The notes beneath the pieces were generated by a model. The model was not told the origin of the DNA. It ran no database searches and saw only the letters and a list, made by a program, of their open reading frames with translations. This document shows, in pieces, positions 136 to 51,669 of a DNA stretch of 64,000 nt. This DNA is from Oculina patagonica (Eukaryota): positions 33,232,001 to 33,296,000 of the forward strand of contig NC_135769.1 in the NCBI RefSeq assembly GCF_052425735.1, read 5' to 3'. The translations under genes were made by a program, and so were the position numbers. How positions within the stretch are numbered: position 1 is the first letter of the stretch; the number at the start of each line of letters is the position of its first letter.

Positions 136-1065
136 ATGGAAGATTCATTATGTGAGGAATTGCTGAAAATCGAGTCACCCACTTCTAATATCGAAGACTT
201 GTACTGGTCATACATCGTCAATTGTGTTTTTAACGCTTTCTTATCGTATACCACTATCATGTTGAACATTTTAACAATCCATGCGATGAGAAAAACTTCG
301 TCGTTACCAGAGACTTTAAAGACATTGCTCCTAAGTCTTGCTGTTTCTGATCTTGGTGTTGGTTTAGTGGTTCAACCTTTTTACAGCGTATTGCTGGGCA
401 ACTGGTCACAGCAAAACAACCCAAACTGTTTAACCAAAATGGCTTTTGCCATAATTATATTTGTTATTTTCTTTCCATCGTTTATTGGAGTTATGGCCAT
501 AACTTTAGACAGGTTCTTAGCCATTTATCTTCATCTCAGATATCAGGAACTTGTGACTCACAAGCGTGTTGTTGCTGTGGTGATCTTGATGTGGATGTCC
601 ACTCCATTTCTTGCCTTACTTATGTTTACGACGTGGATCCCGGGCAGAATTTCTACCACGGGTTTAGCCAGTTGTTCAGTTTTAGGTCTCATAATTACAG
701 CTTTACTTAATTTCAAGATTTATGTGACCGTACGACGCCACAAAAATCAAATTCAAGCTCTACAACTACAAGATCAAACGACACCGAATAGGGAACTGGC
801 AAACTTTGCGAGCGTCAAGAAATCTGCACTCGGTACATTTTACGTATATCTCGTGTTTCTGTTTTGTTATTTGCCGCGTGGTTGTAATTTGCTTTCCGTT
901 GTGATATATGGACCAACAACCATTAATAAGGCTTTTTCGCTTTATTCACAAACGCTGGTATTTCTTAACTCATCTTTAAATCCTGTCATTTACTGCTGGA
1001 AGATGCGACACATTCGACACGCTATGATGGACACACTGCGAAATATATTTCCAAGAAAAAATTAA
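136..1065 (+). CDS. Intronless class A GPCR (cluster gene 1), cnidarian adenosine/melanocortin-receptor-like orphan family
   Basis: 7 hydrophobic segments; LLLSLAVSDL (TM2), DRF..HLRY (TM3/ICL2), CYLP (TM6), NSSLNPVIY (TM7). ATG at 136 (MEDSLC) aligns with paralogue starts; an in-frame ATG also lies at 121. Confidence 0.93.
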   Translation: MEDSLCEELLKIESPTSNIEDLYWSYIVNCVFNAFLSYTTIMLNILTIHAMRKTSSLPETLKTLLLSLAVSDLGVGLVVQPFYSVLLGNWSQQNNPNCLTKMAFAIIIFVIFFPSFIGVMAITLDRFLAIYLHLRYQELVTHKRVVAVVILMWMSTPFLALLMFTTWIPGRISTTGLASCSVLGLIITALLNFKIYVTVRRHKNQIQALQLQDQTTPNRELANFASVKKSALGTFYVYLVFLFCYLPRGCNLLSVVIYGPTTINKAFSLYSQTLVFLNSSLNPVIYCWKMRHIRHAMMDTLRNIFPRKN

Positions 1066-1684
1066 GGCGAAACGAAATCCGACTAACCATATTTGACCAT
1101 ATGTTTTCCGACATGCGTGGTCTTGTTATGTTGGAAAATATAGACGGCAAATTTGGTAAGGGTAAAAAAAAAAAAAAAAAAAAAAAATGGGGGGGGGGGG
1201 AAAAATATCACCGCAGTGTGTTTTCTATCTTTACTGAAGTTAAGATGGCCTAAGAATAAGAGTGAAACTAATGCGAACTACTTTAACAGGTTATGTAATA
1301 CTGAATGACACAGCGAACTGTGTCAAATTTCATGATCAGCTAATATGACGTCTTCACGCAGCTAACTACTTGTTATTGGTTGTTTTTTCTTAGTTTCGTT
1401 TCTAACTTACGAAATGTTTAAAACTCATTCGACAAAATGCGCTATCTTGTATCCAAACTTCATGATATTGAATCTGAATAATATGAAAAAATGACGGAAT
1501 GGTACTTTTATGAAAAATATGACCTGTAACAGAAGTTCAACTTTTGCCTTTTACTATTCATCCACCAGGAGATGTGTGAACGCTTGATTTTGGAAAGAGT
1601 TTTGAGTGATACAAAAATACTCATAACTATGTTTATGTATATGAAGATAAAAGATCTTCGTCTTTGTCAAGTCTTAAACTTGAA

Positions 1685-1753
1685 AGTAAGTAAGTAAGTA
1701 AATAAGCAAGCAAGTAAGCAAGAAAGCAAGCAAGCAAGTAAGTAAGTAAGTAA
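1685..1753. repeat. (AAGT)n/(AAGC)n microsatellite
   Basis: Direct reading. Confidence 0.9.
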
Positions 1754-2590
1754 AGACTTTATATAACGAGGGTAGCACTAAAATAGTATTAAAATACTAA
1801 CATACCAGGGCCTTTTCTATATGTATAAAGTCTTCTTTTTGCAAAACTGTCGCATGTGCCAAAAATTTAATCATGAAAATGTGGTTTAAAAGAGAGTTAT
1901 TTCAGGGAGGTGGATTCGCGGTATCTTAGGAGACATCATAGCCGAGTTTTTTCTTTCAAAAGGCGACAGCTGCAAAAGATGCAGTAATTACAAGTTTTTT
2001 GCCTCACAGGCTGTATAATGGGCACTGAATGGGTAGCTGTTCGACTGCATGAGGTCAACTTGTTACTTTCTAAAAATAAAAAATGTTTTTGTTAGGCTTA
2101 GCTTTAAATTAAAAAATCATATTTCAATCCAAGCTATCGGTTTTGAAGTAAACAGAAGCCTTGTGACAATTACATCATCGCAAAGAAATATTGTCTTAAT
2201 TCTACGAATTCTCTTCTTTTCTAAACATTGTGCTATAATTAAAACTTAACCAACAAAAGCTTCGTCTTCGTCTTTAGCGTCTTCAACAATGTGCGCCTAT
2301 AACAGCTATTTAAAACAAACAGTTCTGTCTTTTGTTAAACATACAATTCTGGAAGAAAATTTCCCCAAAAGATCATTCTCCACTTGTGAATATCACTTCC
2401 TTTCTGTCTTTGTATCCAGCATACTGATTGTGAATAGTACCAAACACACATAATCTTGATTCGCTAACCTGAGAAGCTGTGCTAGTTCAACTGAAGAATA
2501 CATATTAGGGAAAGGACAGAAAGTTTGCTTCATACCTTTTACTTTTTTACGCAATATCTGTTCAGTGCTTCTTTCGCACGTTAAATCGAC

Positions 2591-3520
2591 ATGGAAGATT
2601 CATTTTGTGAGGAATTGCTGAAAAACGAGTCAACCGGGTCAAATATCGAGGACTTGTACTGGTCATACGTCACTAATTGTGTTTTGAACGCTTTCTTATC
2701 GTATACTGCAATCATGTTGAATATTTTAACAATCCACGCGATGAGAAAAACTCCGTCCTTGCCAAAACCTTTGAAAACATTGCTCGTGAGTCTTGCTGTT
2801 TCTGATCTTGGTGTTGGTTTACTGGTTCAACCTTTGTACATCGCAACACTAGGCAACTGGTCACAGCATAACAACACAAATTGTTCCACCGACAAGGCTT
2901 TGAAGATCGCCATAAGTGTGTTCTTCTTTCCTTCGTTCTTTGGCGTTATGGCCCTGAGTGTAGACAGATTCTTAGCTATTCATCTTCATCTCAGATATCA
3001 GGAACTTGTGACTCACAAGCGTGCTGTTGCCATGGTGATTTTAATATGGTTTGTCAGTCCGTTTCTTTCGTTAATACTTTTTACAACGTGGATCCCAAAG
3101 AACATAAGTCGAGTGTTAATGGCCTGTGGTGCATTTTTTTGTCTCTTAAGTACAACACTGTTTAATTACAAGATCTTCTTTGCCATACGACGCCACACAA
3201 ATCAAATTCAAGCCTTCCAGCTGCAAGAACAAACAGCACAGAATGGTGAAATGGCAAACTTTGCGAGCATCAAGAAATCTGCGCTCGGAACATTTTACGT
3301 CTATCTGTTGTTTTTATTTTGTTATATGCCACATGGTTTTAATATTATGTTCATTTTGATATATGGAACAACAACGGTTAATGCGAGTCTTTCACTTTAC
3401 TTTCAGACGCTGGTTTTTACTAATTCATCTTTAAATCCTGTTATTTACTGTTGGAAGATGCGACACATTCGACACGCTATCATAGACATACTGCGAAAAT
3501 ATATTTCCAAAAGAAACTAA
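2591..3520 (+). CDS. Intronless class A GPCR (gene 2), tandem duplicate of gene 1
   Basis: 309 aa, same motifs; 5' and 3' flanks also homologous to those of gene 1 (e.g. ~1270-1680 vs ~3530-3950). Confidence 0.93.
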   Translation: MEDSFCEELLKNESTGSNIEDLYWSYVTNCVLNAFLSYTAIMLNILTIHAMRKTPSLPKPLKTLLVSLAVSDLGVGLLVQPLYIATLGNWSQHNNTNCSTDKALKIAISVFFFPSFFGVMALSVDRFLAIHLHLRYQELVTHKRAVAMVILIWFVSPFLSLILFTTWIPKNISRVLMACGAFFCLLSTTLFNYKIFFAIRRHTNQIQAFQLQEQTAQNGEMANFASIKKSALGTFYVYLLFLFCYMPHGFNIMFILIYGTTTVNASLSLYFQTLVFTNSSLNPVIYCWKMRHIRHAIIDILRKYISKRN

Positions 3521-6520: not shown

Positions 6521-7471
6521 ATGACAAATTCACTGTGCGATGAATTGCTACAATACCAGCCCTCGAGCTCCGAAGCTGAAAGTCTCTTTCCGTGGTACAT
6601 CGCTGCTTGTATCTTCAACGCATTTTTGTCCTACACCGCCATCATGCTGAACAGTTTAACAATCAATGCGATGAGGAAAACGACATCATTGACAAAGTCT
6701 TTAAAAGCATTGCTCCTGAGTCTTGCTGTTTCTGATCTTGGTGTTGGTTTACTGGTTCAACCTTTTGCAATCGCATTGACAGTGAAGTGGTCACAACAAA
6801 ACAATCCAAGCTGTGCAACATATACTGCTTTTACCAACATCTTAACTTTGTTTTCTTTTGCTTCGTTCTTCAGTGTTATGGTCATCAGTGTAGATAGATT
6901 CTTAGCTATTCGTCTTCATCTCAGATATCAGGAACTTGTGACTCACAAGCGTGTTGTTGCTGTGGTGATAACAAAGTGGGTGTTCAGTACATTTCTCTCT
7001 TTGATGATGTTGTGGACGCCGACAATCGTTTCTTACGTAGTTTTTGCCATCGTTGAAGTTCTTTGCCTCGTAACCACAACGCTCCTCAACTACAAGATTT
7101 ACTTGGCTGTACTACACCACAAAAATCAAATTGAAACTATTCAAGTACAACAAGGACAAGCACAGAATAACGAAATGACAAATGTTGCGAGGATCAGAAA
7201 ATCTGCCATCAGTACATTCTATGTATATCTGGTGTTTATGGCTTGTTATTTGCCACAGATCTGTAGTTATGTTGTCATTACAATATCCGGGCAAAGTACC
7301 ACTGTTAAAGGACTTTCAGTTTACACTTTGACGCTGGTGTTCCTCAATTCAACTCTCAATCCTGTTATTTACTGTTGGAAGATGAGACACATTCGACACG
7401 CTATCGTTGACATTCTAAGAAATATATTTTCTCTACACTCGGAAACAGAAAACCATAGAAGCTTGAGATAA
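6521..7471 (+). CDS. Intronless class A GPCR (gene 3)
   Basis: 316 aa; SLAVSDL, DRF, HLRY, CYLP, NSTLNPVIY. Confidence 0.93.
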   Translation: MTNSLCDELLQYQPSSSEAESLFPWYIAACIFNAFLSYTAIMLNSLTINAMRKTTSLTKSLKALLLSLAVSDLGVGLLVQPFAIALTVKWSQQNNPSCATYTAFTNILTLFSFASFFSVMVISVDRFLAIRLHLRYQELVTHKRVVAVVITKWVFSTFLSLMMLWTPTIVSYVVFAIVEVLCLVTTTLLNYKIYLAVLHHKNQIETIQVQQGQAQNNEMTNVARIRKSAISTFYVYLVFMACYLPQICSYVVITISGQSTTVKGLSVYTLTLVFLNSTLNPVIYCWKMRHIRHAIVDILRNIFSLHSETENHRSLR

Positions 7472-14643: not shown

Positions 14644-14860
14644 ATGTTCTGTAGTGAGCTTAGATGACGAGAAATCCTACCAGCCCTCGAGCACCGAAGC
14701 GGAAAAACTGCGTTTCATATGCATCGCTAACAGTGTTTTGATCTCGTATTTGTTTTACACCGTCATTACTTCAAACAATGTTTGTCTTGAAATTCGTCGT
14801 TGTCATGGCTTGTACAAGCGCTAGGTTTGCTCCTTAGCCTTGCTTTATGTGACCTGACAA
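14644..14860 (+). pseudogene. Degenerate 5' remnant of a cluster GPCR
   Basis: Translates in pieces to YQPSSTEAEKLRFICIANSVLISYLFYTVI and LLLSLALCDL, matching gene 3 (YQPSSSEAESL..., LLLSLAVSDL); no continuous ORF. Confidence 0.7.
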
Positions 14861-15631: not shown

Positions 15632-16567
15632 ATGAGAAAAGCTTGGTGTGGTGCGTTACTGCAGTTCCTGCCATCAAGTGCCGAAGCTGACGATCTCTTC
15701 TCTTCGTTTATCGCCAATTGTGTTTTGAACGCTTTCTTATTTTACACAAACATCGTGTTGAACATTTTAACAATGCACGCATTGCGGAAAACGTCATCGC
15801 TGTTAGAGCCACGGCTAAAAGCTTTGCTCCTAAGTCTTGCTGTTTCTGATCTTGGTGTTGGTTTACTGGGTCAACCTTTTTACATCGCATTGCTGATTAT
15901 GGCGTCACAACAACAAGACCCTACATGTGCCACCAATACTGTCTATGTTATTATTTTAAACGCCTTTTGTGCAGCTTCGTTTTTGACCATCATGGCACTA
16001 AGTGTGGACAGATTTATGGCAATACAATTGCATCTGCGATACCAGGAACTCGTGACTCGCAAGCGCGTTGTTGCTGTGGTGATCTCAATCTGGGTGTCAA
16101 TCTGGGTGTTATGTGCCACTTTCTATCCGTTAGCATTTACTTTACTGCACCCGAACATTGTTCACTTTATCGTAGTTGCAATAGGAACAGCTTGTCTTTT
16201 GGTTGCTTCCGTGGTATCTTTGAAGATTTATTTGGTTGTACGGCGGCACAAAAGACAAATTCAAGCCCAGCTTCAACAACTAGCACAGAATGGTGAATTA
16301 GCAAATATTGCGAGTCTCAGAAAATCTGCAGTCAGTATTTTCTATCTATACCTCGTGTTTTTAGTTTGCTATTTGCCTCAGTTTTGCATGTTAACTTTCA
16401 TTATAATACACGGCCAAACTATGGCTACAAAGCAGTTATTAACCTTCACATTGACAGTTGTATTTTTTAAATCATCTTTGAACCCTGTTATCTGTTTTTG
16501 GAAGATAAAGCATATCCGCCGTAATGTAATTATCACTTTTCGGAATATATTTCCAAGTCAAAACTGA
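15632..16567 (+). CDS. Intronless class A GPCR (gene 4), atypical TM4/TM7
   Basis: 311 aa; family motifs; 12-bp in-frame duplication in TM4; TM7 reads FKSSLNPVICFW. Confidence 0.9.
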   Translation: MRKAWCGALLQFLPSSAEADDLFSSFIANCVLNAFLFYTNIVLNILTMHALRKTSSLLEPRLKALLLSLAVSDLGVGLLGQPFYIALLIMASQQQDPTCATNTVYVIILNAFCAASFLTIMALSVDRFMAIQLHLRYQELVTRKRVVAVVISIWVSIWVLCATFYPLAFTLLHPNIVHFIVVAIGTACLLVASVVSLKIYLVVRRHKRQIQAQLQQLAQNGELANIASLRKSAVSIFYLYLVFLVCYLPQFCMLTFIIIHGQTMATKQLLTFTLTVVFFKSSLNPVICFWKIKHIRRNVIITFRNIFPSQN

Positions 16568-18020: not shown

Positions 18021-18944
18021 ATGAAAGATTCATTTTGTGATGCATCGCTGCAACACTTGCCTTCAAGTTCCAAAGTGGATAGCTCATACTCGACATACAT
18101 CATGAACTGTGTCTTCAACGCTTTGTTTTCATGTACCGCCATCGTGTTCAACCTTATAACTATCCTCGCCATACGAAAAACTTTGTCGCTGTCAAAGCCT
18201 TTAAAAACACTGCTCATGTGCCTTGCTGTGTCAGATCTCTGTGTTGGTTTATTTGGCCAGCCTTACTACATGGCATTGCTGATAATGGCGTTACTACAGA
18301 CTAATAGTGGCTGTGTCGCCAATACCACTTTCCTTAGTATTTTGGGCGTGTTCTGTTCAGCTTCGTTTCTAAGTATCATGGCTTTAACTGGAGACAGGTT
18401 TGCGGCGGTTCAGTTTCATTTACGATACCAGCAAATTGTGACTCACAAACGTGTAATTGTTACAGTGATCTTAATATGGTTATTTAGCGCTTTCACTCCG
18501 TTGTTATATCTTTCGATTAACCCAGATGTTATTCACCTCGTGTATGCTATTAATGGAATGGTTTTCCTTGCTGGCATATCTCTAGTATATTTGAAGATAT
18601 ATTTAATTGTACGGAGACATAAAAATCAAATTCATTCCCAATTACAACAAGTAGCACAGAATAGAGGAATAGCTAATATTGCAAGTGTAAGTAAATCTGC
18701 CGTCAGCATGTTCTATGTATACCTCGTATTTCTTGTTTGTTACTGTCCGCATTTTTGTGCCATTACTGCTGCTATAATTTACGGTCCGGGAACACGAAGC
18801 GTTCTCAGTGATTGTTTAATCTTCACATTGACAGTGGTATTTCTTAGTTCGACGATGAACCCAATTGTTTATTGTTGGAAAATGAGAAACATTCGACGCT
18901 CTGTGGTAAACATCATTCAAAGTATGTTCCCAAGTCTAAACTAA
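18021..18944 (+). CDS. Intronless class A GPCR (gene 5), most divergent member
   Basis: 307 aa; CLAVSDL, GDRF, HLRY, CYCP, MNPIVY. Confidence 0.92.
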   Translation: MKDSFCDASLQHLPSSSKVDSSYSTYIMNCVFNALFSCTAIVFNLITILAIRKTLSLSKPLKTLLMCLAVSDLCVGLFGQPYYMALLIMALLQTNSGCVANTTFLSILGVFCSASFLSIMALTGDRFAAVQFHLRYQQIVTHKRVIVTVILIWLFSAFTPLLYLSINPDVIHLVYAINGMVFLAGISLVYLKIYLIVRRHKNQIHSQLQQVAQNRGIANIASVSKSAVSMFYVYLVFLVCYCPHFCAITAAIIYGPGTRSVLSDCLIFTLTVVFLSSTMNPIVYCWKMRNIRRSVVNIIQSMFPSLN

Positions 18945-27047: not shown

Positions 27048-30000
27048 TATTTTGTGCTTTTTGGACCTTCCCCACTGTCATCGACAAAACATGCACTATA
27101 CTAGCTTGGTGCATGAAAGAGTTTCCCTGAAACTGATGTGAAAACGTCAGATGGCCAGGCTTTTACGTTTTCCAAACTTCCTTCCACATTCCAAATTTGC
27201 ATAAGCAATTAAGTCAGATTGATGAAGTATTAAATTTTAAAATAATTAGAATATTTCCACCGCTGTATTAAAACTACTCTTGAACCACATCATACTCGTC
27301 ACTTTTTGAGACTTGTGCACAAGAGTCTTATCTTTAACGATGACCTGTTTTGCACACAAATGTCGTTTGACTTTGGAACAAAGACGTTTTACTGCTACTC
27401 AACTCTCTTAGTTACATGTTTTCAGAGTAATAATAGAATCCTCGTGAAAAGACAAAATGTTTGTTTTATAATTGGCCTTTCATGACATGTAGCAGGGCCT
27501 AGAGCAGGTTAATCGAAAAGTAGCTTTATTTGTAGGACTACAGATAATCAGCATTAAAATAAAACCCTGGTAACAAGGCAAAATGTTTGCTTTATTCTTG
27601 GACTTCATGCCATGTAGCAGTGCCTAGAGTAGGTTTCTCGTCTGAAAATGAGCTGATTGGATTCTTGTCACTGAGTTCTCTACAAGGGGAAATTATTATT
27701 TCCTGGGATTTTCAGCTTTTTCGATGCTTTCAAAATTGCTTTATCACTGCGAAGGTTAAAAATATTTCCTTCTCCATCGACTCCCTCGGGTTTCTTTTGC
27801 ACCGTATTGCTGGCAAAAAAAAACTAAACTTCCAGGAAATTTATTAAAATTCTCTTTAGAAATGAGCTATTATTCAGAGTTCAGAAACGTACAACTGTAA
27901 GGCCTGCTGACGCAATCCTATTAGAAACTGACGTCTGTATTCCGGACGAGCTGACGTGTGCAAGACGTCCGGAAAAAGCCGTCAATAAATTTCTTCCCCT
28001 TACAATGTAAAGTAGATGCTTCGATAACCCAATATCAGAAGCGCGAGATGTGGGGAAAATTAACGTATTCTACATTTTCGAATTCACGCAAAAGCTAAGC
28101 CTGCTTCTGGCGTTTGGAGGCGTATTTTCCTAGTTAAAAATTTCACTATTTGGATAAACCAATACAAAAAAGTTTTATTCTAAACAAAAAATCATTCGTT
28201 CGACATATTTTGACCTCGTGTCCACCGGTTTTATTTATTCGCAAGCAGCCTCGGGAAAAAACGTTTCGACAGTTTCGATGTTTGGCCAGCGGTCGCTTCA
28301 CTATCACAAGATTAACAACTGAAACTTAAACACGAAATAAATGAAGATTTGTCTCAGAAATTTTCATGTGTAAACTTAGTATAATCAAAAAGATAACAAA
28401 ACAGAAATACTACACAATGCAAAACATTTTGTGCGCGTCGAAATGTCTGCGCAGGACGCAAAAAGCACATGAAGACATAGTTTTTGCCATGGTTTGCCCT
28501 CTGATTGGTTCATTTGAATTTAAATGCCCGTATCGTATGGCAGGTGAGTTGTGAACTTAACCCGCACTTAAGCGGCGAGCGGTTTTCTCAAAAAGAGTGA
28601 AGGGAGACTGATGGGTAGTCCGTGACCTCTGAGGATGTTTGTAAATGTTGAATCCCCAATCAAATGGCCAGCGGTCAGCAATTTTTCCGGAAATGGGTCG
28701 AGTGTGTGGTGAGTTAGACCAATCAGCACTCGGTGGCCCCTGGTATGAGATGACTGAGGGAATTATGGAGTCTTGGATATGGAAACCGTAACACAAAGGA
28801 GACGACTTCAACAAAGAGATTACTCTCGATATGCGCATTCACTACAAAGACGCATTATTCTTTACGCCACCCTGTGTGTGTCTTAAAGTAATCAAAACCA
28901 ACTCCTCTGAAACAACTTTCCAAGAAAACATACAGAACACAGAATTCAAGTCTAGGCTGCGCTGGAGGCAGAATTTTTCATTTTCTCAGTTTTTTTTCAT
29001 CAAGGACAGCGTAAGAAAACATTGCCCTTGGACGAGCAAATAGTCCAGTGATCAAGCTTCTGTCAGTGCCTAACCTTTAGGATATTATAGTAAACAAATT
29101 GCATCTTATAAAATCAGCTGCTACTCAGTGGAATATACTAGAACCTATCTTTGTATCATACAGAAACGGTAATTTTTCATTATCGCCAGTGTCGAATCAG
29201 CTGTCAGACAACTAAACGTCGAACGAGCGGACACGGTCAGAAGAACTGTCAACAATATCCTTCAACAGGCAGAACTACCAGAGCCTAACATCCCGAAGGA
29301 AATGCGAGACGCGCTCAAAAGCCTAAAGGAGGACGAGTCCATCATGGTTCTCCCAGCAGATAAAGGGCGTGCAAGCGTAGTCATGGATGCTGATACCTAC
29401 CGCACTAAGATGTCTACCCTGATCGAGACCGGACCGTACCAGCGCCTGAACAAAGACCCGACAGACCGTTTGACTCGAAAGCTGTCTGAAAAGCTGCTTA
29501 CCCTGAAACGAAACGGAGATCTATCAGAGGCCGTTTACAACAAGATCAGACCCCGACACAAACAGCCGCCAAGAATCTACGGTTTACCAAAAATCCACAA
29601 GGCCGATATACCTTTAAGACCTATTGTATCATGTGTTAACACCTTTGCATATGATTTATCCACCTACTTAGCTAACATCTTGTCTCCTTTGACAGGTAAC
29701 TCGGATTTCACGGTGACTAATTCAGCCCACTTCGTATCCACCATCAGCAGTGAGACGATCCTAGACAACGAGATCATGGTGTCCTTCGACGTAGAGTCGC
29801 TGTTTACCAACGTTCCTATCGACGGCGCTGTACAAGCCGCGCTACGGAAACTAGAGAACGACCCCAGCCTTGCTGACCGCACAACGCTAACACCTGCTCA
29901 GATCGCTGACCTTCTGACGTTTGTATTGAGATCCACATACTTTCAGTATAACGGATCAATCTACGAACAACAAGAAGGCGCAGCCATGGGAAGCCCGGTT

Positions 30001-30723
30001 TCCGCTGTTATTGCTAACCTCTACATGGAGAGCTTTGAGGAGCAGGCTATAACTTCATCATCCTACAAGCCTAAGATATGGAAACGCTACGTGGACGACA
30101 CCTTCACCATCTTGGATCGCGAAAACGTCGATAGCTTCTTATAACATCTTAACATCCAGCAGCCTTCCATCCGTTTCACCATTGAAACAGAGAATGACAG
30201 CAAACTCGCCTTCCTTGACACCGCAGTTTCGAGAGAACCAGACGACCGTCTCACCTCCAGCGTATACAGGAAGCCTACGCACACTGATCAATACTTAGCG
30301 TATGATTCACATCACCCTCAATCAGTAAAACGCGGTATTGTTAAGTGTCTTTACGATCGTGCTAAACGCCTCGTAACAAAACCATCTGTTACCTCCAAGG
30401 AGAAAAAACATCTGTCATCTGTTCTTGTATCTAATGGTTATCCTTTTTCTTTCTTGCAGAAGATCACCAAGACCAGAAAACCGAGCACCAACGCTGAACC
30501 CGCGACCGAGTTTAAATCCACTGCGGTTTTGCCCTACGTCAAAGGCCTTTCCGAACAACTTCGCCGCTGCCTACAACAACAAGGCGTGCGGGCTGTTTTC
30601 AAGTCGGAAACCACACTACGATCACACCTAGTACGGCCGAAAGACGCTGTTGATTCCACTAAGCAAGATGGTGTTGTTTACAGGATTCCCTGTGAATGTG
30701 GCAAAGTTTACGTCTCGGTGAGA

Positions 30724-32865
30724 ACACCCCTCTGTAACAGACCTGGTGAAACCCGACCTGGTGGGTTATTTTACCCTCCCTGGTGGAAATTTGACCTCCC
30801 TAGTCCCTGGTGATTATCTGAAAAATCCCTGGTCAATTTTATTTCTCCCCGGTGAAGAATTTTGTTTACCTGGTCAGGAAAAATCAACCAAAATCTTTCT
30901 GCTGGCTTAAACAGAAGAAAACGACGCGCGGCAAAAAGATAATTTAATATTTGACTATAACTTGATGTAAATAGCAAAAAGTAATTGTTAACTTCTTTCT
31001 ATTGTTTTTGTCGCTTGTTCTGCTGTCATGCACGTCACTGAAGAGACAAAACAGATCTGTTTCCTTTTCTATATGTAATACGAGCATGTGAATGATTCAG
31101 AGCGATTTGAACAGCGCGCGCGGCCCAAAGCGAATATGTGGAAGTATTTTCGACCCGGCTATCTACAGCATTTTATAGAACAAATACGCAGAGGATAATC
31201 AGCTTGACCGATATAATTCTTGGTGAGTATTAAGTGGCTTTTTTCCGTCGATTAAGCAGCCTTGAGCAGTTTGAGCGGCGTTTGATGTAAATATCGTGTT
31301 TAACTTTGCAGCCCGCCGGCACAATGTGACGTAAAAAATACGCAAGTTATTCAAGTGCATTCAAGATCATTCAAGTGGCGTATTATGATATATTTTTTAA
31401 TTAAGCTGCCTCAAATTGTAAGTACAGTGTAAATAGTACTTTGTGTAGCTTTCACCTGCGTGAAACTAGTAATGCCTAACTGGAGGACAGCAATCATTAA
31501 CACGTATTTTTCACTGCTCGCTAAATCCGAAAAAAGGGACAATTCATTCGACCTGTAAAAGATATAAGCAGACGGTTTTCTTATTTTGATTCTTTATGCA
31601 TTGACCTCAAAAATGGATCAACGAATAAGAGCCGGCATTGTAAACATTTTGCAACTGTAACGGTAAACGGAGACACAGTTTTAATTTAGGCGCACCCGTG
31701 CTAGACAACCTCTGGATCTGTCTCTTGGTGCACGTCTCTTTTGATCATAAATCTTTATGTCAGTTACCTTCTGGAAAAGTAATTGAATTTGTATTCAGAT
31801 TAGCAGGGCTTGAGAGACGTTCAAACTAGGGAGTCGAGAAAATGATCCCACGAAAATTTATCCCAAATTCTTTGAAACAGTATCGAATATCTGGCTGAAT
31901 TAACATTAACCTTTGATTAATTTTAAGTCGTAAATTTATGTTTTGGCGGGTGCAATCCGTCAAGCGCAAGGTTGGTTGCCTGGTGAAGCTGCCTGGTTGC
32001 ATATGAAAGTCCCTTCAAAACGCACGAAATGTGATCTCGGGCTGTCTAATCTTTCAAATTTTCCCGGGGAGGCATGCCCCTGGACCCCAGTAGCTTACAC
32101 CTTCGGCTTTCACACGATTCCATCTTCCACTCGGATCTTTGGCGCTCTGAAGAACCGTCGTTTTAAATCCTGCCTACAGGCCTGCTTAGAACTGGAAAAG
32201 TAACATGCATCTAAAGGAAGTTTAATCATTTTAAGGCGATGACGTCAGTCCATTGCCTTATATCATTAGGCGGTCGGCGGAATTTGTTCTTCTGTTCGTC
32301 ATCGCTTCTACCTGCATTGCGTGCCGTTTATGGTACTCTGACGGGCAAAGAATTTTAGAGGATTTCAGGAATCTAAACTCCGGCGGACCCATTGCAGATG
32401 GCGGTAATGCACTGTGCGATACAAAGAACGCTCGGGGATCGCAAAATCGGCTCGTTTGCCGTATAACGCGAAGGACTTAAAGGACTTCTTATACAAGAAA
32501 ATAAGTCCGATGCCTTTATTCGATTTGGTTTCTCCTTTGCCACTTTTCTTCGTGTAAGAGCAGGATACAGACAGTACGTTACTTCAGTTGTTTACGTACA
32601 ATGCAAAAGAAACAACGGTGTCATCTACAGCCGTTAGTTAGGCGACATCGGTGCGGAAAGTTGTGCACGATTACCCCGCTAAGTTTTATTGCATATTGGG
32701 TCACAAAGTTTTGCATATACATGCATACATGGTTAGATTTAATAAATCATCGACCTCCGTGGTGAAAAAAAAATCAACCTGGTGGATTTTTTACTGCCCT
32801 GGTCGATTTTGTGTTGAAAAACTGGTGGAAAATCAGGTGTTACCAGGTCTGTTACAGAGGGGTGT
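30724..32865. mobile_element. Non-autonomous TIR DNA transposon, 24-bp TIR, 6-bp TSD
   Basis: Perfect TIR ACACCCCTCTGTAACAGACCTGGT; GTGAGA at 30718-30723 and 32866-32871; subterminal CCTGGT repeats; no transposase ORF. Confidence 0.92.
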
Positions 32866-33287
32866 GTGAGACTGGAAGACCTATGCAAGACAGGATCAAA
32901 GAACACGACCGGGACATCCGACTCGCCCGTACCCAGACCTCCGCCGTTTCAGAGCACTCCCACAACACCGGACACTACCCGCTTTGGAATGAGGTAAAGT
33001 TTATTGATCGTGAACCACACTGGTACAAACGAAGGGTCAAAGAGGCAATTCACATAAGACTTCACCCTAGTAATATCAACAGGGATAATGGAATTGAAAT
33101 TCCTGAAGCATGGATGCCTACGATCAAAAAACACAACAACAGGAGAACTGTACGACAGCGGACCGCTGAGGGAACAACAGGACACAGAAACAGCGAGGAT
33201 CGAAATGCACCAATCACAGCTGTTGAAAACCAACCAATAACAGCGCAGCAGCATGCTTTATAAGTTCACGCACAACCAGTCGACCTT

Positions 33288-40961: not shown

Positions 40962-41810
40962 CACCGAACATGGGAACACAGGCATCAGATGGAAGTTCAA
41001 CAACTTCCTAGAAGATCTTGATTTTGCCGACGACCTAGCCCTGATCTCAAGCAGTGGAAGGCATATCCAGGCTAAAGTCAGCAACCTGGAGCGATATGCA
41101 AAAATGACAGGCCTCAGAATCAATGCAGCAAAGACCATGATGATGAGCTGGAACAACCCCGCAGGCAGAAAGGTCCAGGTCGATGGAAAAGAGCTAGAAG
41201 AGGTGTCAAAATTTGTGTATCTAGGAGGGACAGTGACCCAGGAAGGGGGTTCGGACGAAGACATCAAAAGCAGACTTGGAAAAGCCAGAGCAGCATTCAG
41301 CAAGCTTAGAAACATATGGAAGAGCAGCCAGCTGAAACTAACAACTAAGCTGAAGATATTTAAGTCCAATGTTGTATCTGTCCTGTTATACGGATGTGAA
41401 ACTTGGCGTATGACTAAACGAGATGCGACCAAGCTGGACGTATTTCTGCATAAAAGTCTGAGAAGGATTATGAAGATCTATTGGCCTATGAAAATATCAA
41501 ACGAGGAGATTCGAAAACGGGCTAACATCAGCACCATCAGCGAGCAAATCTTCCGGCGGCGCTGGAAGTTCATCGGCCACATCCTCAGAATGGATCCAAG
41601 CAAACATCCCAAGACGGCATTAACATGGGCCCCAGAGGGAAGGCGAAGGCGTGGCAGACCGAGAGAGACTTGGCGAAGAACTGCAGAGAGAGAAAGAGCG
41701 GCTTTGGGTTTTGGCTCGTGGAACCAGGCAGCGGTGGCTGCCCGTGACCGTGCAGCATGGCGGAGAAGAATGTCCGGCCCTATGCCCACTTAGGGCTTTG
41801 GACATAAGTA
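40962..41810 (+). mobile_element. 5'-truncated RTE-like LINE with ~70-bp target-site duplication
   Basis: LEDLDFADDLAL, GLRIN..KT, F.YLG, VLLYGCETW, W..IGH..R, GRP..TW; very short 3' UTR ending TAAGTA; direct repeat 40885-40961 / 41807-41877. Confidence 0.9.
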
Positions 41811-41992: not shown

Positions 41993-42907
41993 CTAATTGC
42001 GACCCGAAAATATATTTCGCAGTACAGCCATGGTAGCCTGTCGAATGTGTCGCATTTTCCAACAGTAAATAACAGGATTGAGAGTTGAATTAAGAAATAC
42101 CAGTGACGCAGTGTAAAGTAACAAACCATTTGTAACTGTACTTGAATCTGATATGGCACTGACAACAAACATGCAATTTTGTGGCAAATAACAAAGAAAA
42201 AACATGAGGTATACGTAGAACGTGCTGAGGGCAGTTTTTCTGAGGCTTGCAACATGTGTTACCTCGTCAAGTTCCAGTTGTTGTTCTTGTATTGGGAGAG
42301 TTTGAGTTTGATTGGTGTGGTTCCGTACGACTACAAAGATATTACAGTAAATCAATGTCGTCGTTAGAAAACAAACAACATCAACAGTAACAAAAATCGC
42401 GTAAGTAGCCATCTTTGGTAACAATGAAGTTAGCGAAAGAATTGCACTCAACACCCAAACTGAGATCACCACAGCAACAACCCGCTTGTGAGTCACAAGT
42501 TCCTGATATCTGAGATGAAGTTGAATAGCCAAGAATCTGTCTGCACTTATGGCCACAACACCAAAGAACGAAGCGAAACAGAAAAAGATTGTTAACATAG
42601 TAAAGGCACCATAGGTGGCGCAATTAGAATTGTTTTCTTGACATTTTCTGACCATCAGTTCGATGTAAAAAGGTTGAACCAGTAAACCAACACCAAGATC
42701 AGAAACAGCAAGACTCAGGAGCAATGTTTTTAAAGGCTTTGGCAACGACGAAGTTTTCCTTATCGCGTGGATTGTTACAATGTTCAACATGATGGCGGTG
42801 TAGGATGAGAAGGCATTGAACACAGAATTAGCGATGAACGATGAATACAGCGGGTCTTCAGCTTCGAAACCTGGGTGCAGAAATTCGTCACATAAAGGAT
42901 TTGCCAT
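41993..42907 (-). CDS. Intronless class A GPCR (gene 7)
   Basis: 304 aa; SLAVSDL, DRF, HLRY, CYLP, NSTLNPVIY. Confidence 0.93.
   Translation of the reverse strand: MANPLCDEFLHPGFEAEDPLYSSFIANSVFNAFSSYTAIMLNIVTIHAIRKTSSLPKPLKTLLLSLAVSDLGVGLLVQPFYIELMVRKCQENNSNCATYGAFTMLTIFFCFASFFGVVAISADRFLAIQLHLRYQELVTHKRVVAVVISVWVLSAILSLTSLLPKMATYAIFVTVDVVCFLTTTLIYCNIFVVVRNHTNQTQTLPIQEQQLELDEVTHVASLRKTALSTFYVYLMFFLCYLPQNCMFVVSAISDSSTVTNGLLLYTASLVFLNSTLNPVIYCWKMRHIRQATMAVLRNIFSGRN

Positions 42908-43784: not shown

Positions 43785-43786
<2 letters not shown>

Positions 43787-43820
<34 letters not shown>
43787..43820. repeat. (AAT)n microsatellite
   Basis: Direct reading. Confidence 0.9.
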
Positions 43821-44554: not shown

Positions 44555-45475
44555 TCAGTTTTGAGCTGTAAATCTATTTCGCAATACGTTCATGACAGCT
44601 TGTCGAATGTGTCTCATTTTCCAACAGTAAATCACTGGGTTAAGAGACGAATTCAGAAACACAAGAGTCCAAGTGTACAAGAAAGCACCGACGAGAGTAG
44701 TACTTGGTCTGAAGATTATACTTAAAACAAGAGTGCAATGCTCTGGCAAATAGCACACCAAAAACACAAGGTATACATAAAATGTGCTGAAGGCAGATTT
44801 TCTCAGCCTCGCAATATTTTCCATTTCGAAATTCTGTGCTACTTGATGTACTTGCAGGGTTTGAATTTGGATTGTGTGGCGTCGTACGGCTGAATAAATC
44901 TTAAAATAAACAATTGTTGTACAAATGAAACAAAAACTTGAAAGAACAGTGATCACCAAGGAGGTAATCTTTGTAACCCGTAAATCAATTAAGGACAGAA
45001 GTGCGCTTAACACCCATATTAAGATCACCATGGCAACCACACGCTTCTGTGTCACAAGCTCCTGATATCTGAGATGAAGATGAATAGCCAAGAACCTGTC
45101 CACACTTATGGCCAAAATTCCTAAAAACGAAGCACTAGAAAAGAAACAAAATACAGTAAGGGACGCGGTATACATGGCACAAGTAGGGCTGTGTTCCGTG
45201 TTTCCTTGTAACCACTTGACCATCAGTGCGATGTACAAAGGTTGAACCAATAAACCAACACCAAGATCAGAAACAGCAAGACTCAGGAGCAATGTTTTTA
45301 ACGGCTTTGGCAACGATGAAGTTTTTCTCATCGCATAGATTGTTAAAATGTTCAGCATAATGGCGGTGTAGGATGAAAAGGCGTTCATCACACAATTAGC
45401 AATGTACGATGAATAAAGCGGGTTTTCGGCCACAGAATCCAAGTGCAGAAATCCGTTACAGAATATATCTGCCAT
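44555..45475 (-). CDS. Intronless class A GPCR (gene 8)
   Basis: Family motifs; first true ATG at 45475 (MADIFC); the ORF track starts at a TTG at 45484. Confidence 0.92.
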   Translation of the reverse strand: MADIFCNGFLHLDSVAENPLYSSYIANCVMNAFSSYTAIMLNILTIYAMRKTSSLPKPLKTLLLSLAVSDLGVGLLVQPLYIALMVKWLQGNTEHSPTCAMYTASLTVFCFFSSASFLGILAISVDRFLAIHLHLRYQELVTQKRVVAMVILIWVLSALLSLIDLRVTKITSLVITVLSSFCFICTTIVYFKIYSAVRRHTIQIQTLQVHQVAQNFEMENIARLRKSAFSTFYVYLVFLVCYLPEHCTLVLSIIFRPSTTLVGAFLYTWTLVFLNSSLNPVIYCWKMRHIRQAVMNVLRNRFTAQN

Positions 45476-47343
45476 ACTCTCCAATTCTCGTCACAGGTAG
45501 AAAATTTGAATGCGCGTCCTTTTTGCTCTGAGTGAGTTTTACCCGAAATGTTTCTTTGCCTGTGACAGATGTCTCGGACTCCACTCGTTAGAAAACTCTT
45601 TTCTTGTGCGATCTGAACTGAAGTCGAAAGACAAATTTTCAAAAGGAGCAATAACGTTCGTCCAGTGGGGAAAATAATGTTTTTAAGTCATATTTGTATG
45701 ACATGTTTGTTTAAGAGCTCTTTGATGCTCTGTCTGTGCGCGCGTGTTCCACTTATTGGAACAAACTGTAACCAGACCATTTGCAGAGTTAATGAGAATG
45801 AAAGTTTTGAAGCCTATCCAAAGTCTAAACACGAGGCTTGATAGCGATGTAAAATTTAAGGTATTTATCTATCATTGGATGGTATGTAGTTGGTTGGTTT
45901 ATGTTCATGCGGTGGTTATCTTTTTGTTAACGGATTCAAATGCAAACGTTCGCGGACAAACATCATTTCTACGTCACTGAACATAAACATTGAGCTCGGT
46001 TTGTGGTTTCAGCTGGACTACACTCAAAAGGCAAAGATTAAAAAAGCTCACGTTGTATAAATACACCGAGCGATATTTTATATTCAAGCGCTGGTTTGAA
46101 AGTCGAAATAGCAACTGTGTTTAACAAACTGCCATCCTTTTCCTAGCGAAAGTTTATGTCGAAACAGGCGTTTTCCTTCGGCCAAAAAGTCATTTTTTAG
46201 ATTCCTATATAATAATGCTACTAAATTGTTCAGAATATGTTTTTTTCTTGTCGAGATGATAGTTCTCAGTGAAAAATTAAGAGATTAACTCGGATTCGAA
46301 CTCCCAGTTTGAGTTTTCTTGCCTCGCATAAGTAAATTTCCATTAAAACTAAATTTCGATTTGAAATAGTGCTTCGGTTTTTTTGAAAACCAAAACCATA
46401 CAAATATTAGGCGGGTGATCATTTGATATGTGCATCCTAAGCCAAGATTCATGAAGATTGCCTCATTCCACTCAAATTACCTTATTTCCGTAAGTTTTTA
46501 ATATTAACTAACTCATCAACGTCATCTTGATTACAATCATCGCTGTAAGGCATTCTTTTGTGCTCAACAGAGTATGTGCAACATTTTTTAAATGCCATGT
46601 TTCTAAGAAAGCTGACCATCAGATAACTATCTCGTTTGAAGATTGAAAGTGATCGTAACGTTGTTTGCAGATCACGAGAAAGCTCGAAAAAATTCGAAAA
46701 CCGGAAACACCGGACACAGATGAAATCTTATTCGGTTCGTAATCGCCCACAAAACGACTCTGAGTGATCTGCTGCGCATTGAAAAAATTTTAAAAGCAAC
46801 AAAATCAGACAAATTACTTAGAAACGGCCAGCTACTATATGTAAACTAGTATTGACATGATCGAGACAGCTTTTATCAGATCTTTCAGTCGCACGAACTC
46901 GACACTTGAATTTGTTAGTGACAGAAAGGAAAAGAGAAGTCAGAAATGGATCATTGATAAACACGTTCATGTCTTATGGAAACTTATCACGTGACCATAT
47001 TACTTCAGAAGGATGAGTGCTAACATACAGAGTAAACTTATTGGACTAGCTGTATTGCTCTCGACCAATCAGAATCGAATGATTATGTTGGGTGTATAAT
47101 GAGAGACAGCAATGCTTTATATTTCTGTGCCGTTCAGCAGGCCTTAGGCCGGATGTCAAACGCTCAAAGCTCAACTCTCTGCCACCTTCATACAGATTTC
47201 ATGTGGATATTATTTTTATCTTTGCTGCTTTGGGGATGAGTTCATGATGAAATTTTTAAGTTTGCACTTCGAAAGCGAGGCTTGGTGGTAAGACTAGCCA
47301 GTCTGACGTAACCATGCACAAGGGCTGTCAATATCGGCTTTAC

Positions 47344-48261
47344 TCAGTTGTTACTTGGAAACATATTTCGCAATGTGTCAATAATAGCGTGTCGAATGTG
47401 TCTCATCTTCCAACAGTAAACCAAGGGGCTTAGAGATGAATTTACAAACACCAGAGTCCATGTATACAGTTCAAAACCTTCTAAAGTTATACTTGGTTCT
47501 CGGATCAGTATACTTGCAAAAGAAGTGCAATATTCTGGCAGATAACAAACCAAAAACACGAGGTATACGTAGAATATGCCAATGGCAGTTTTTCTCTGCC
47601 TCGTAACATTTCCCATTTCACCATTCTGTGCTACCTGTTGTACTTGCAGGGCTTGAATTTGGTTTGCGTGGCGTCGTACAGTGAAGTAAATTCTGCAATA
47701 AACAACTCCTGTAGAAATAAAACAAAGACCTGAAAAAATAGTCACGAGAATTCCGTAAGTAATAGCTGCCATCCACAAATCGATTAACGATAGAAATGCA
47801 CTGAACACCCAAATTGAGATCACCACAGCAACAACACGCTTGTATGTCACAATTTCCTGATATCTAAGATGAAAATGAATAGCCAAGAATCTGTCTACAG
47901 TTATAGCCAGAATACCCAGAAACGAAGCAATAGCAAAGAACCAAATGATAATAAAAGACCCGGCATACATGGCACAAGTGTGATTATCTTCACTGACCAA
48001 CAGTGCGATGTACAAAGGTTGAACCAGTAAACCAACACCAAGATCAGAAACAGCAAGACTCAGGAGCAATGTTTTTAAAGGCTTTGGCAACGACGGCGTT
48101 TTCCTCATCGCGTGAATAGTTAAAATATTCAGCATGATGGCAGTGGAGGAAGAGAAAGCGTTAAACACACAATTAAGGATGTACGATGAATAGAGCGGGT
48201 CTTTAGCTTCGGCAGTCCAGTCCTGGTATTGCAGCAATTCGTCACAGAAAGCATAATTCAT
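47344..48261 (-). CDS. Intronless class A GPCR (gene 9)
   Basis: 305 aa; family motifs; TM7 NSSLSPLVY. Confidence 0.92.
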   Translation of the reverse strand: MNYAFCDELLQYQDWTAEAKDPLYSSYILNCVFNAFSSSTAIMLNILTIHAMRKTPSLPKPLKTLLLSLAVSDLGVGLLVQPLYIALLVSEDNHTCAMYAGSFIIIWFFAIASFLGILAITVDRFLAIHFHLRYQEIVTYKRVVAVVISIWVFSAFLSLIDLWMAAITYGILVTIFSGLCFISTGVVYCRIYFTVRRHANQIQALQVQQVAQNGEMGNVTRQRKTAIGIFYVYLVFLVCYLPEYCTSFASILIREPSITLEGFELYTWTLVFVNSSLSPLVYCWKMRHIRHAIIDTLRNMFPSNN

Positions 48262-50085
48262 GGTTCTCGATTATTTTGAAGGGTACGCGCGTTTTGAAGT
48301 AATATTTTCCCTTCCTTTTCTTCTTGAATATTTTTTTAAACACGAGAGTACAGGTGTCTCCACCACATATAGTAATTACTTCATCAGAATATTGTTCTTA
48401 CTCGTTTCCATAAATGGTCATGGAAAAAGTTGCAAACAGCAATAGAGTTAATCCAACAAAAAACAAGGAAATGTTGTACTTTGTTGTTGCAATTGTGTGT
48501 TGATGTTTTTCTCTTTCATTTCTGTGCCCCGTTAATACGCATTTTAATTTTGTTGCTTGCGTCGTAAATTAACGGCACAACTTTCGCTGATTCTATTGGA
48601 GTATTATGATAATTTATTGCTTTGACAATGGACAAACATGCATTTGCGAATTAACATCGTCACTAGGCTGAACGTCTGGTTTTAACAATGAACTAGTTTG
48701 TAGATTGGATCCTCAATGTCTAATGCTCGGCTCCTATTTTTAGCTTAATTAACAAACGTCACGTTATTTGTCCTACACTTAACATCCGTACATACGTCAT
48801 TTGAAAACAAGAATATTGAGCGCGCCAATAACCTAACACAGGTGTTTCCGACCTGTCTATCTGAAATTAGCTGCTTTGAAAAAAGTTCCTCTTAAAGCTA
48901 CGGATAAAAACAGAACGTTAGATTATAAACGGGAAATTAATTGTCGCAATAAGTTGATCAAGAAAGCTATTAGACTTCAGAAAAGTAAAAAGCAATGTGA
49001 TGACAACTGCACGGAGACACCACAACGCGGGCTCATGAGTGATATATGTCTTATTCTCCTTACCATATCAATACATTGTCAGAAGAAAGGTGTTGAGAAT
49101 AGAGAAAATCATCAGCTAGCTAATCATCAGCAACCACGTTCTTGGAACTAGCACTGAACGAAATGCCAGATAGTTAGGTTAACTGTTGTTTCTAGTCAGA
49201 AATAAAGTTATTAGTTTCTAAGCTTCACTTTATCAACTAAGTAAAACACTTAGTTGATTACCAACTGGAAGTTGGTAAAGGAAAATAAACCGCGTAGCGA
49301 ATTTTAATAAGCTGACGTTTCGAGCGTTGGCCCTTCGTCGTGTTTCTTGTCAGAGACTGCAAGGGTTAGTAGTTAGAGGCCGAGCTAACATAGTTTTTTT
49401 GGACCGCACGTGTACACAGGAAGCTAGAAGGTTGACAAAATGTTAAAATCCATTTCTGTTTTCCTACCAGCATCGCAGTGGTCATTTTGCCAGTTTAATT
49501 TTCCTTCCTTTATATTGTGGCAATATCTTATTCATGATTAATAAGTCAAGTTATTCAAATTCAATATATCAGTGATTCTGTTCACTGTTGTTCAGCCAGG
49601 CATGTGCAAAGTTTCATATTTTTTGAAACTGTGAGACTAAAGATCAGCCGTTTACATCAAAACATTCGGAACAAAATGGAAATGAAACATGATAGATTAA
49701 TTTAATCCAGCAGTCAGGCACCTGCTGTAAAATGAGAATATACCTGCCTGTCAAGTTTAGTGGGTTGGAGCATTTCGTGTAGAAAGTCATTTCTGCGGCT
49801 GAATGACATTGTTTGTTTAATACAAATGCAAAAAACAAGTTCCGGCACATTGGAAAGTAATAAATGAACAAACCAAAATAGCAAGAGGGACGTGAGTCAA
49901 TTCTCCTTGGTGCATATCAACTACTTTAAGAGTCAAGTCTCTTTTTATAAATTTTTTATTAATCACATGGAGAGAAATTCAGTTTCCACCAAGCATTTTT
50001 CTCCGAGGTGATCAGGTTTTCATTCTCACAGCCTATCACACCCAGAATAATAGATAATTGTGTCTTCAGCATACACTGATGCTAA

Positions 50086-50311
50086 GTGACGGACCATTAG
50101 AAATAGCCAGAGGGTGGTGAATTTCCCCAAAAAAATTCCTGCAATGGAAACTTGTCTAAAAAGAAAATTCCTGCAAGCGGTTGTACCTGAAAAAAATTCA
50201 TGCAATGGAAAAAAACAAGTCCTGCAGACAAGTACGCCTTAACAAAACATTCGTGCACGGAAACTTTTTTAACTACCCCCCCTCCCCCGGTTATTTCTAA
50301 TGGTCTGTACC
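50086..50311. mobile_element. PIF/Harbinger-like MITE, TAA TSD (copy at 59071-59298)
   Basis: TAA|GTGACGGACCATTAGAAATA ... TATTTCTAATGGTCTGTACC|TAA; AAAATTCCTGCA internal repeats. Confidence 0.75.
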
Positions 50312-50627
50312 TAATCGACGAGTGCGATAAACACTGGGGCTAATCGTCAATGTCTGTCACAGACAGTATAACCAAGAGGGGGGTCCTGAGGAACGCCGAA
50401 GCCTAGAGGAAGGCTGGATGGTTTATTTCTTTCTATATAAAGTTCTCTGCGAACAGGTAGTCAGATAATTCCTGAACCAGCCGAGACTGTGCTCTCTAAC
50501 TCCGTACTGCTGCAGCTTTAACTATTATATTTTTTTAAGACAAATTATTATGTTTTCACCAGCAGGGCTCCTCTGCCTCTCTGGATCCCATCCAAGTTGC
50601 TGAATGGGCCATCCTGCCTTAATAAAG

Positions 50628-50693
50628 TTGACTGACTTACTGACTAACTGACTGACTGACTGACTGACTGACTGACTGACTGACTGACTGACT
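50628..50693. repeat. (TGAC)n microsatellite, probable retroposon tail (copy 59616-59664)
   Basis: Directly follows CCTGCCTTAATAAAGT. Confidence 0.85.
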
Positions 50694-50733
50694 TGTTTTA
50701 AAAAAGGTTTCTTGATTTACTCGTGTTTGCTGT

Positions 50734-51669
50734 TCAATTTAATTGTAGCGTTTCAATCAGGTCATGTCTTGGTAACATGTTCCCCAACATGTCCATGATA
50801 GCGTGTCGAATGTGTCTCATCTTCCAACAGTAAATAACAGGATTTAAAGATGAATTAAGAAACATCAGGGTCCATGAGTAAACTACTAAACCCTTCATTG
50901 CGGTCATTGGTCCAGAGGTTGCACTGACAATAAAACTGCAGATCTGTGGCAAATAACACACTAAAAATGCAAGATATACGTATAACATACCAACTGCAGA
51001 TTTCCTGACGCTAGCAGCGACATTTGCCAGTGCTACATGCTGTACTTGTAGGGCTTGCATTTCATTTGTGTGTCGGCGAACAACTAGATAAACTTTGTAA
51101 TTAAGTAACGATATAGCTACGAGGCAAGAAATATCGATAATAGTAAAAGTTATATCAGTAACATTCGTGGGAGTCCACAGCGCAAATGTTGAAATAAAAA
51201 CACTGATTACCCATATTGAGATCACCACAGCAACAACACGCTTGTGAGTCACAAGTTCCTGATATCTGAGATGAAGATGAATAGCCAAGAATCTGTCTAC
51301 ACTTATGGCCGTAACACCAAAGAACGAAGCAAGAGAAAACACCATTGTGATCAAAGTGTAAGTAGTATAGGCAGCACAGTTAGGATAGTTCCCTTGTAAC
51401 CACCAGACCATCAATACGACGTAAAAAGGTTGCCCTAGTAAACCAACACCAAGATCAGAAACAGCAAGACTCAGGAGCAATGTTTTTAAAGGCTTTGGCA
51501 ACGACGAAGTTTTTCTTATCGCGCGGATTGTGACAATGTTCAACATGATGGCGGTGTAGGATGAGAAGGCGTTGAACACACAGTTTGCGATGTATGATGA
51601 GTAGAGGTCTGCAGCTTCAGAACTCGAGGGCTGGTAACGAAGCAATAAGTAACAAAAAGAATTTGTCAT
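50734..51669 (-). CDS. Intronless class A GPCR (gene 10)
   Basis: 311 aa; all family motifs. Confidence 0.93.
   Translation of the reverse strand: MTNSFCYLLLRYQPSSSEAADLYSSYIANCVFNAFSSYTAIMLNIVTIRAIRKTSSLPKPLKTLLLSLAVSDLGVGLLGQPFYVVLMVWWLQGNYPNCAAYTTYTLITMVFSLASFFGVTAISVDRFLAIHLHLRYQELVTHKRVVAVVISIWVISVFISTFALWTPTNVTDITFTIIDISCLVAISLLNYKVYLVVRRHTNEMQALQVQHVALANVAASVRKSAVGMLYVYLAFLVCYLPQICSFIVSATSGPMTAMKGLVVYSWTLMFLNSSLNPVIYCWKMRHIRHAIMDMLGNMLPRHDLIETLQLN

Follow-up and report, generated by a model that had tools for sequence, protein, structure and literature searches.

Synonymous constraint elements lying in coding sequences were reportedly mapped in mammals by Lin and colleagues in 2011. 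In the clustered protocadherins, the variable exons harbor a conserved CTCF site within the coding sequence, which is used in the regulation of the family; to our knowledge, CTCF is absent from cnidarians. In plants, the microRNA (miRNA) miR482/2118 targets the P-loop coding motif of NLR genes. As far as corals are concerned, tandemly amplified rhodopsin-like G protein-coupled receptors (GPCRs) represent the most abundant amplified domain, with 34 of the 192 amplified orthogroups, according to the passages of Noel et al. 2023 (PMC10236652) dealing with these genes. In this work, we analyzed a stretch of 64,000 nucleotides (nt) of the coral Oculina patagonica (chromosome C12:33232001-33296000 of a 529-Mb genome), hereinafter the window, which contains no N and harbors ten intact (g1 to g10) and three broken single-exon class-A GPCR genes. 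These genes are members of a very large single-exon class-A GPCR family of stony corals, and their coding sequence (CDS) embeds three short blocks, located in transmembrane helix 2 (TM2), in intracellular loop 2 (ICL2) up to the start of TM4, and in helix 8, whose silent sites change at roughly one third the rate of the other silent sites of the same genes, the drop at helix 8 falling short of significance when taken alone. This slow-down is local, independent of protein conservation, not due to codon bias, family-specific and persistent between species; indeed, it holds for paralogues genome-wide and for coral lineages split before silent-site saturation. We consider it probable, if far from certain, that the nucleotide sequence itself is under purifying selection, through an element within the CDS that would be read as DNA or mRNA, with gene conversion as an added cause.

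The TM2 block had been noticed as a 29-mer identical in all the intact genes but g5, and exact matches were indeed found at all nine positions: 334-362 (g1), 2789-2817 (g2), 6719-6747 (g3) and 15833-15861 (g4) on the forward strand, and 26821-26849 (g6), 42687-42715 (g7), 45255-45283 (g8), 48032-48060 (g9) and 51443-51471 (g10) on the reverse one. The same 29-mer is present in two of the broken copies (57052 and 60413) and, with one mismatch, in the third (54946), and had 0 matches in 100 sequence shuffles. The 35-mer of ICL2, said to be identical in six genes, is exact in all of them (532-566 in g1, 2987-3021 in g2 and 6917-6951 in g3, forward strand; 26629-26663 in g6, 42483-42517 in g7 and 51239-51273 in g10, reverse strand) and in one broken copy (60209), g8 exhibiting three mismatches (45042-45076, reverse strand); it had no match in shuffled sequence. 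As for the 22-mer of helix 8, no mismatch was found in g1 (997-1018), g2 (3452-3473) and g3 (7376-7397), on the forward strand, and in g9 (47391-47412) and g10 (50805-50826), on the reverse one; there is one mismatch in g7 (42040-42061) and g8 (44602-44623), both on the reverse strand, two in g5 and more than three in g4 and g6. The blocks at TM2 (~57 nt) and at ICL2/TM4 start (~70 nt) are longer than first noted; that at helix 8 extends over ~35 nt. A perfect 15-nt palindrome, whose center is the AP-1-type core TGACTCA, lies in the ICL2 block (549-563 and the equivalent site of other genes); as a hairpin or binding site it is not supported by the variants of the other genes, which are not compensatory and affect the TGACTCA core itself.

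The ten window genes, compared by the Nei-Gojobori method on a codon alignment, exhibit a whole-gene mean proportion of synonymous differences (pS) of 0.52 and of nonsynonymous ones (pN) of 0.26. Since the overall pS is so high, the paralogues are old and the blocks stand out, with a pS of 0.14-0.16 at TM2 and 0.29-0.31 at ICL2. TM7, with its NPVIY motif, has a pS of 0.55-0.64, and therefore, at this end of the gene, a tendency to low silent divergence concerns helix 8 only; the initial annotation, which regarded the TM7/helix-8 stretch as near-fixed, is overstated, holding weakly for helix 8 and not for TM7. The marked protein divergence described for the N-terminus, extracellular loop (ECL) 1, TM4-TM5 and ECL3 was recovered, the pN of these segments being 0.35-0.53. 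The possibility that g5 might be the seed of a separate subfamily with blocks of its own was also explored, and the g5 group shows no blocks.

The distribution of the TM2 block extends far beyond the cluster in the window. With up to three mismatches, the 29-mer has 203 sites in the genome, distributed over at least seven chromosomes (C1, C3, C4, C7, C8, C11 and C12) plus a small contig, and 52 of them are exact; in a frequent variant, the sole change is from Leu to Val after Asp. The same decapeptide is encoded from the same codon boxes at 163 sites, in 114 of which T occupies every free third position. The family itself comprises ~3800 first-look candidates, and the 130 scored among them all have an identity to g7 of 51% or more. 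A genome search with the Pfam 7tm_1 profile gave 5062 first-look candidates, and most of the 147 that were scored span the whole domain in one open frame with no stops; the class-A GPCR repertoire of O. patagonica thus looks very large and apparently mostly intronless.

The silent-site rates were analyzed on a sample in which 80 additional Oculina paralogues, chosen by protein search and not by the 29-mer search, were joined by genes from other corals; the Oculina sample represents the ~130 genes closest to g7 among the ~3800 candidates, and the Porites sample consists of 7 genes. Silent changes were counted on a 99-gene tree among the sequences sharing the major amino acid of each column, and were compared with a per-amino-acid expectation by a permutation test. 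TM2 (SLAVSDLGVGL) underwent 0.31 of the expected silent changes, the lowest value of all ten-codon windows (permutation p<2e-4), the ICL2 to TM4 start segment 0.44 (p about 0.006), and helix 8 0.47 (p about 0.1, not significant alone). The segments with equal protein conservation used as controls (TM1, TM3 with DRF, ICL3, TM6 and TM7) exhibit no drop, with 0.83-1.12 of the expected changes, and therefore protein conservation is no predictor of the reduction in silent rate. The slow-down holds for TM2 and ICL2, and probably for helix 8 as a third block.

T-ending codon bias coupled to recent duplication, which had been set beforehand as the refuting explanation, does not account for these data. 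Outside the blocks, the frequency of T at third positions (T3) amounts to 0.33 and codon usage is only mildly skewed, and the blocks use the unpreferred codons CTT (0.18), CAT (0.32) and CGT (0.05); given its protein sequence, the TM2 codon string has a probability of 4.6e-6. Moreover, in 17 class-A GPCRs of O. patagonica from outside the family, four of which have SLAVSDL, T3 is 0.27 at the equivalent ten codons vs. 0.26 gene-wide; since no rise occurs at their TM2, the pattern is specific to this receptor family, and codon bias with recent duplication can be ruled out. Wobble-read NNU codons grouped downstream of TM1 might act as a translation pause, a lead that reportedly goes back to Pechmann in 2014 and to the SECReTE work of Cohen-Zontag in 2019. 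A general run of wobble-read NNT codons at TM2 of coral GPCRs serving as such a pause was rejected, being absent from the 17 other receptors, including the four with SLAVSDL.

Whatever conversion did within each genome, copies in two species have been separated for at least twice the split time, and thus under neutrality the blocks should match neutral sites. In the nearest pairs between Oculina and the coral of ENA ERZ25067872, the pS is 0.04 at TM2 (2/46), 0.18 at ICL2, 0.16 at helix 8 and 0.31 in the rest of the gene; in those between Oculina and Porites lobata/P. evermanni (Complexa), it is 0.35 at TM2, 0.34 at ICL2 and 0.57 in the rest. The pS profile of all between-species pairs has the same valleys. 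A neutral calibration was obtained from a single-copy octopamine-receptor-like gene (L092), whose pS is 0.27 to its ERZ25067872 orthologue, with flanks 81% identical, and reaches 0.78, that is, saturation, to the orthologue L122, found on a JGI metagenome contig for which "Acropora palmata" is the source label of the protein cluster. After Jukes-Cantor correction, the block rate is about 0.1-0.45 of the rest-of-gene rate on both time scales. TM2 is therefore far below the neutral level in the ERZ25067872 coral, and TM2 and ICL2 are well below both the rest of the gene and saturation in Complexa. The single-copy receptor was used for calibration because the orthology of the pair formed by L085 (ERZ25067872) and the Oculina C8 locus (L090/L091) is unproven, the wider flanks failing to align. 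The ~160 nt upstream of the L085 start codon (L085:9838-10000) align at ~80% to the nearest Oculina gene at C8, and this conserved stretch may represent a 5' untranslated region or a promoter. The identity between the Porites and Oculina family-consensus codons (89% in the blocks, 58% elsewhere) was dropped as an argument, since the ancestral sequence emerges from the consensus of many paralogues even if nothing constrains it.

Paralogues also often exchange sequence by ectopic gene conversion, the junctions of which gather beside the blocks. In a change-point scan corrected for site variability, 224 of the 4005 gene pairs were significant vs. 4 expected, and the change-points cluster at three sites, namely immediately 3' of the TM2 block, at that of ICL2 and at TM7/helix 8. 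The pS to the left and to the right of the change-point is 0.41 and 0.04 for L045 vs. L047, and 0.09 and 0.46 for g7 vs. L075. The clearest case is located in g7, where CDS nt 61-260 (42648-42847, reverse strand, from TM1 through the TM2 block) are shared with paralogues at C12:31.77-31.84 Mb, 1.5 Mb away, with an identity of 90-100% vs. 53-74% on both flanks; the conversion tract is delimited on both sides and stops just past the TM2 block. The discordance of the per-segment trees, anticipated by the initial annotation, was confirmed, since neither the TM1-TM2 segment nor the remainder of the gene accepts the tree of the other (approximately unbiased test, p=0.0027 and 1.7e-38). Such clear tracts contradict the passages of Noel et al. 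2023 (PMC10236652) on this subject, which state that the tandem arrays of corals undergo gene conversion very rarely. The blocks are relatively more uniform within Oculina (pS at TM2 0.15 vs. 0.49) than in the comparison with Porites (0.30-0.35 vs. 0.6), which fits conversion as an added cause. Hence, of the patchwork conversion originally proposed, the exchange itself is proven, and the low between-species divergence of the blocks is left unexplained by it; its confinement to the signaling scaffold does not hold, as the exchanged tracts carry variable parts too.

One might argue that concerted evolution alone is responsible, conversion being tolerated only where the protein is fixed and homogenizing the blocks with no selection on nucleotides. 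The proven exchange, the junctions lying beside the blocks and the greater uniformity of TM2 within Oculina are all in favor of this idea. However, conversion as the sole cause predicts a neutral-level divergence of the blocks between species, and the observed pS is 0.04-0.18 vs. the neutral 0.27 for the near species and 0.35 vs. 0.57-0.78 for Complexa; furthermore, TM7 is equally conserved as protein and has no silent drop. We therefore regard conversion acting alone as rather unlikely. The low between-species divergence points to purifying selection on nucleotides or, less likely, to a low local mutation rate. Mutational cold spots, or codon bias with recent duplication, might produce the blocks with neither selection nor conversion, and the rate reduction is indeed similar whether the time scale is short or long, which a lower mutation rate would predict. 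Nevertheless, codon bias is excluded, the paralogues are old (pS 0.5), and we know of no mechanism shielding 30-70 nt of CDS in hundreds of dispersed copies, so that we assign to this possibility a very low probability, the lowest among those considered here. Several points weigh against purifying selection on the nucleotide sequence, and have to be set beside it: a local low mutation rate would yield the same rate pattern; the between-species drop is about 2-3 fold and does not amount to a freeze, some of the 7 Porites paralogues having 4-10 changes per block; the tree used for the silent counts was built from recombining sequences, and the sample is skewed toward the genes nearest g7, with as few as seven from Porites; and the helix-8 drop alone falls short of significance. 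In addition, an unrelated four-gene GPCR array at C2:39.81-39.84 Mb (L102, L106, L108 and L110) exhibits pS dips of 0.14-0.23 vs. 0.44 overall, which sit at the TM2 end, TM3 and ECL2; as these local dips suggest, many receptor arrays of corals may be homogeneous block by block, and part of the pattern may be shared by young arrays.

If the nucleotide sequence itself is under selection, the element might work as part of a long-range mRNA fold in which the blocks pair with one another, as a site for small RNAs, or as a site where a protein binds and regulates the family jointly. The alternative already put forward in the initial annotation, i.e., a DNA or RNA motif within the CDS, fits the low between-species divergence of the blocks better than conversion does, and it is in the form of an RNA duplex that it is weak. 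According to the fold model, TM2 would pair with the 3' half of ICL2, and the 5' half of ICL2 with helix 8, the silent sites being kept for pairing. When 82 genes were folded with a partition function, an interrupted duplex of ~23 bp was predicted to join the TM2 region to the ICL2 3' half, with a mean pair probability of 0.55-0.65; its median energy is -26.4 kcal/mol vs. -13.5±3.6 with codons redrawn, for segments that were chosen post hoc (p=0.002). When the duplex test is applied to the conservation-defined blocks, TM2:ICL2 gives p=0.07 and ICL2:helix 8 p=0.04 and, of 21 segment pairs, the two rank second and third by lowest z. On the other hand, the exact blocks first noted give p=0.16, the control pair TM1:TM3 reaches p=0.008, and the TM2:ICL2 duplex is not exceptional with respect to the best window pair of recoded genes. 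The unpaired third positions (columns 54, 58 and 60) are as constrained as the paired ones, and in the predicted duplex compensatory changes are almost none and one-sided breaks are many. The TM2:ICL2 mRNA duplex would thus be a weak candidate only, and we judge a conserved fold an unlikely explanation of the whole pattern. No family match was found for the blocks in Rfam, nor is a long alternative-frame open reading frame (ORF) common to the window genes.

A shared target site, where one miRNA, small interfering RNA (siRNA) or Piwi-interacting RNA (piRNA) would recognize a block family-wide for joint regulation, appears even less probable than the fold. The length of the blocks (29-70 nt) and their family specificity would suit such a role, as would the mode of action of cnidarian miRNAs, which need near-full complementarity and act in coding sequence, as stated in a passage of a preprint (bioRxiv 10.64898/2026.06.11.731608, citing Moran 2014). 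However, the antisense words of the blocks occur in none of the cnidarian small-RNA papers searched, their matches in the literature being unrelated, and three separate blocks would require three guides. Two size-fractionated and one polyA RNA run gave 0, 0 and 3 reads, respectively, the size-fractionated ones being made of 75-nt untrimmed reads under another organism label and hence no small-RNA test; the read coverage of the contig in run X1 also spans intergenic DNA, and so shows no expression.

Between diverged copies, long perfect identity is confined to the blocks, so that exchanges would start or resolve there; an exchange anchored at the blocks would, in turn, confer extra uniformity within the genome. 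On this basis, one can speculate that the three blocks constitute one family-wide control handle in the CDS (a TM2:ICL2:helix 8 fold, a guide-RNA site or a protein-binding site) for switching, silencing or choosing receptors, doubling as junctions for the shuffling of modules, an idea that we put forward as a doubtful one. Corals possess thousands of orphan receptor genes, and a sequence element whose silent sites are preserved in hundreds of copies and in different coral suborders would, if true, offer a concrete and testable handle on family-wide regulation. If the cause were low mutation or conversion alone, the finding would be an ordinary feature of a young gene family.

As to the organization of the window, the ten intact genes consist of one exon of 304-316 codons each. 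On the forward strand are g1 (121-1065), g2 (2591-3520), g3 (6521-7471), the divergent g4 (15632-16567) and g5 (18021-18944), the most divergent one, without exact blocks; on the reverse strand are g6 (26130-27047), g7 (41993-42907), g8 (44555-45484, where the first ATG comes at codon 4 of the ORF as listed), g9 (47344-48261) and g10 (50734-51669). All ten genes carry the class-A hallmarks LAVSD (D2.50, TM2), DRF (end of TM3) and NPVIY (TM7), slightly altered in g4, g5 and g9, and the Pfam 7tm_1 (PF00001) scores of the three genes scored (g1, g5 and g7) are 77-110 bits vs. a curated cut-off of 30.5. The three broken copies are all located on the reverse strand. In that carrying the single TM2 mismatch (52996-55174), ~1.25 kb of inserted DNA separates the 5' half (54735-55174) from the 3' half (52996-53478); the other two are frameshifted, one being g9-like (56346-57383, 94% protein identity) and one g10-like (59705-60615, 98%). 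Since these two resemble g9 and g10 and are arranged like them, the g9-g10 pair was apparently duplicated en bloc (47344-51669 vs. 56346-60615), both new copies having been frameshifted later. A short fragment resembling a GPCR N-terminus (14678-14818) lies 0.8 kb upstream of g4, to which it is 45% identical. Retroelement remains are interspersed between the receptor genes (29302-33263, 41104-41793 and 62042-63723) and include reverse-transcriptase (RVT_1) ORFs at 29302-30144 and 62042-63145, the C-terminal part of the latter recurring as a separate ORF on the opposite strand (63190-63723); a DUF6451 ORF directly adjoins g7.

The receptors described here are the same kind of genes as the coral-amplified rhodopsin-like GPCR orthogroups of PMC10236652, whose passages on GPCRs and gene conversion give copy numbers and describe neither nucleotide-level blocks nor mosaic exchange. 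The mosaic genes, the discordant segment trees, the sharp-edged tracts of ~200 nt and the exchange between clusters of the same chromosome are shared with the concerted evolution of tandem chemoreceptor and immune-receptor arrays; the difference is that, in the coral, conversion covers only part of the uniformity, since the divergence between species is low too. Like the NLR genes targeted by miR482/2118, the coral family is huge and fast-evolving and has one conserved coding motif that might represent a possible handle on all its members, whereas the wobble positions of the target vary in plants and are kept in the coral blocks. With the protocadherins, it shares a conserved DNA element within the CDS of each member of a clustered receptor family; there, the element is a CTCF site with a regulatory use, and the coral blocks are candidate regulatory sites. 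As far as the synonymous constraint elements are concerned, they are observed among orthologues of one gene, and their overlapping functions comprise splicing, dual coding, structure and miRNA sites, whereas in O. patagonica hundreds of paralogues of one family are involved and the element is a candidate one. Nonetheless, in both cases a short stretch of CDS exhibits a silent rate far below the gene average, independently of the protein, and persists as such across species.

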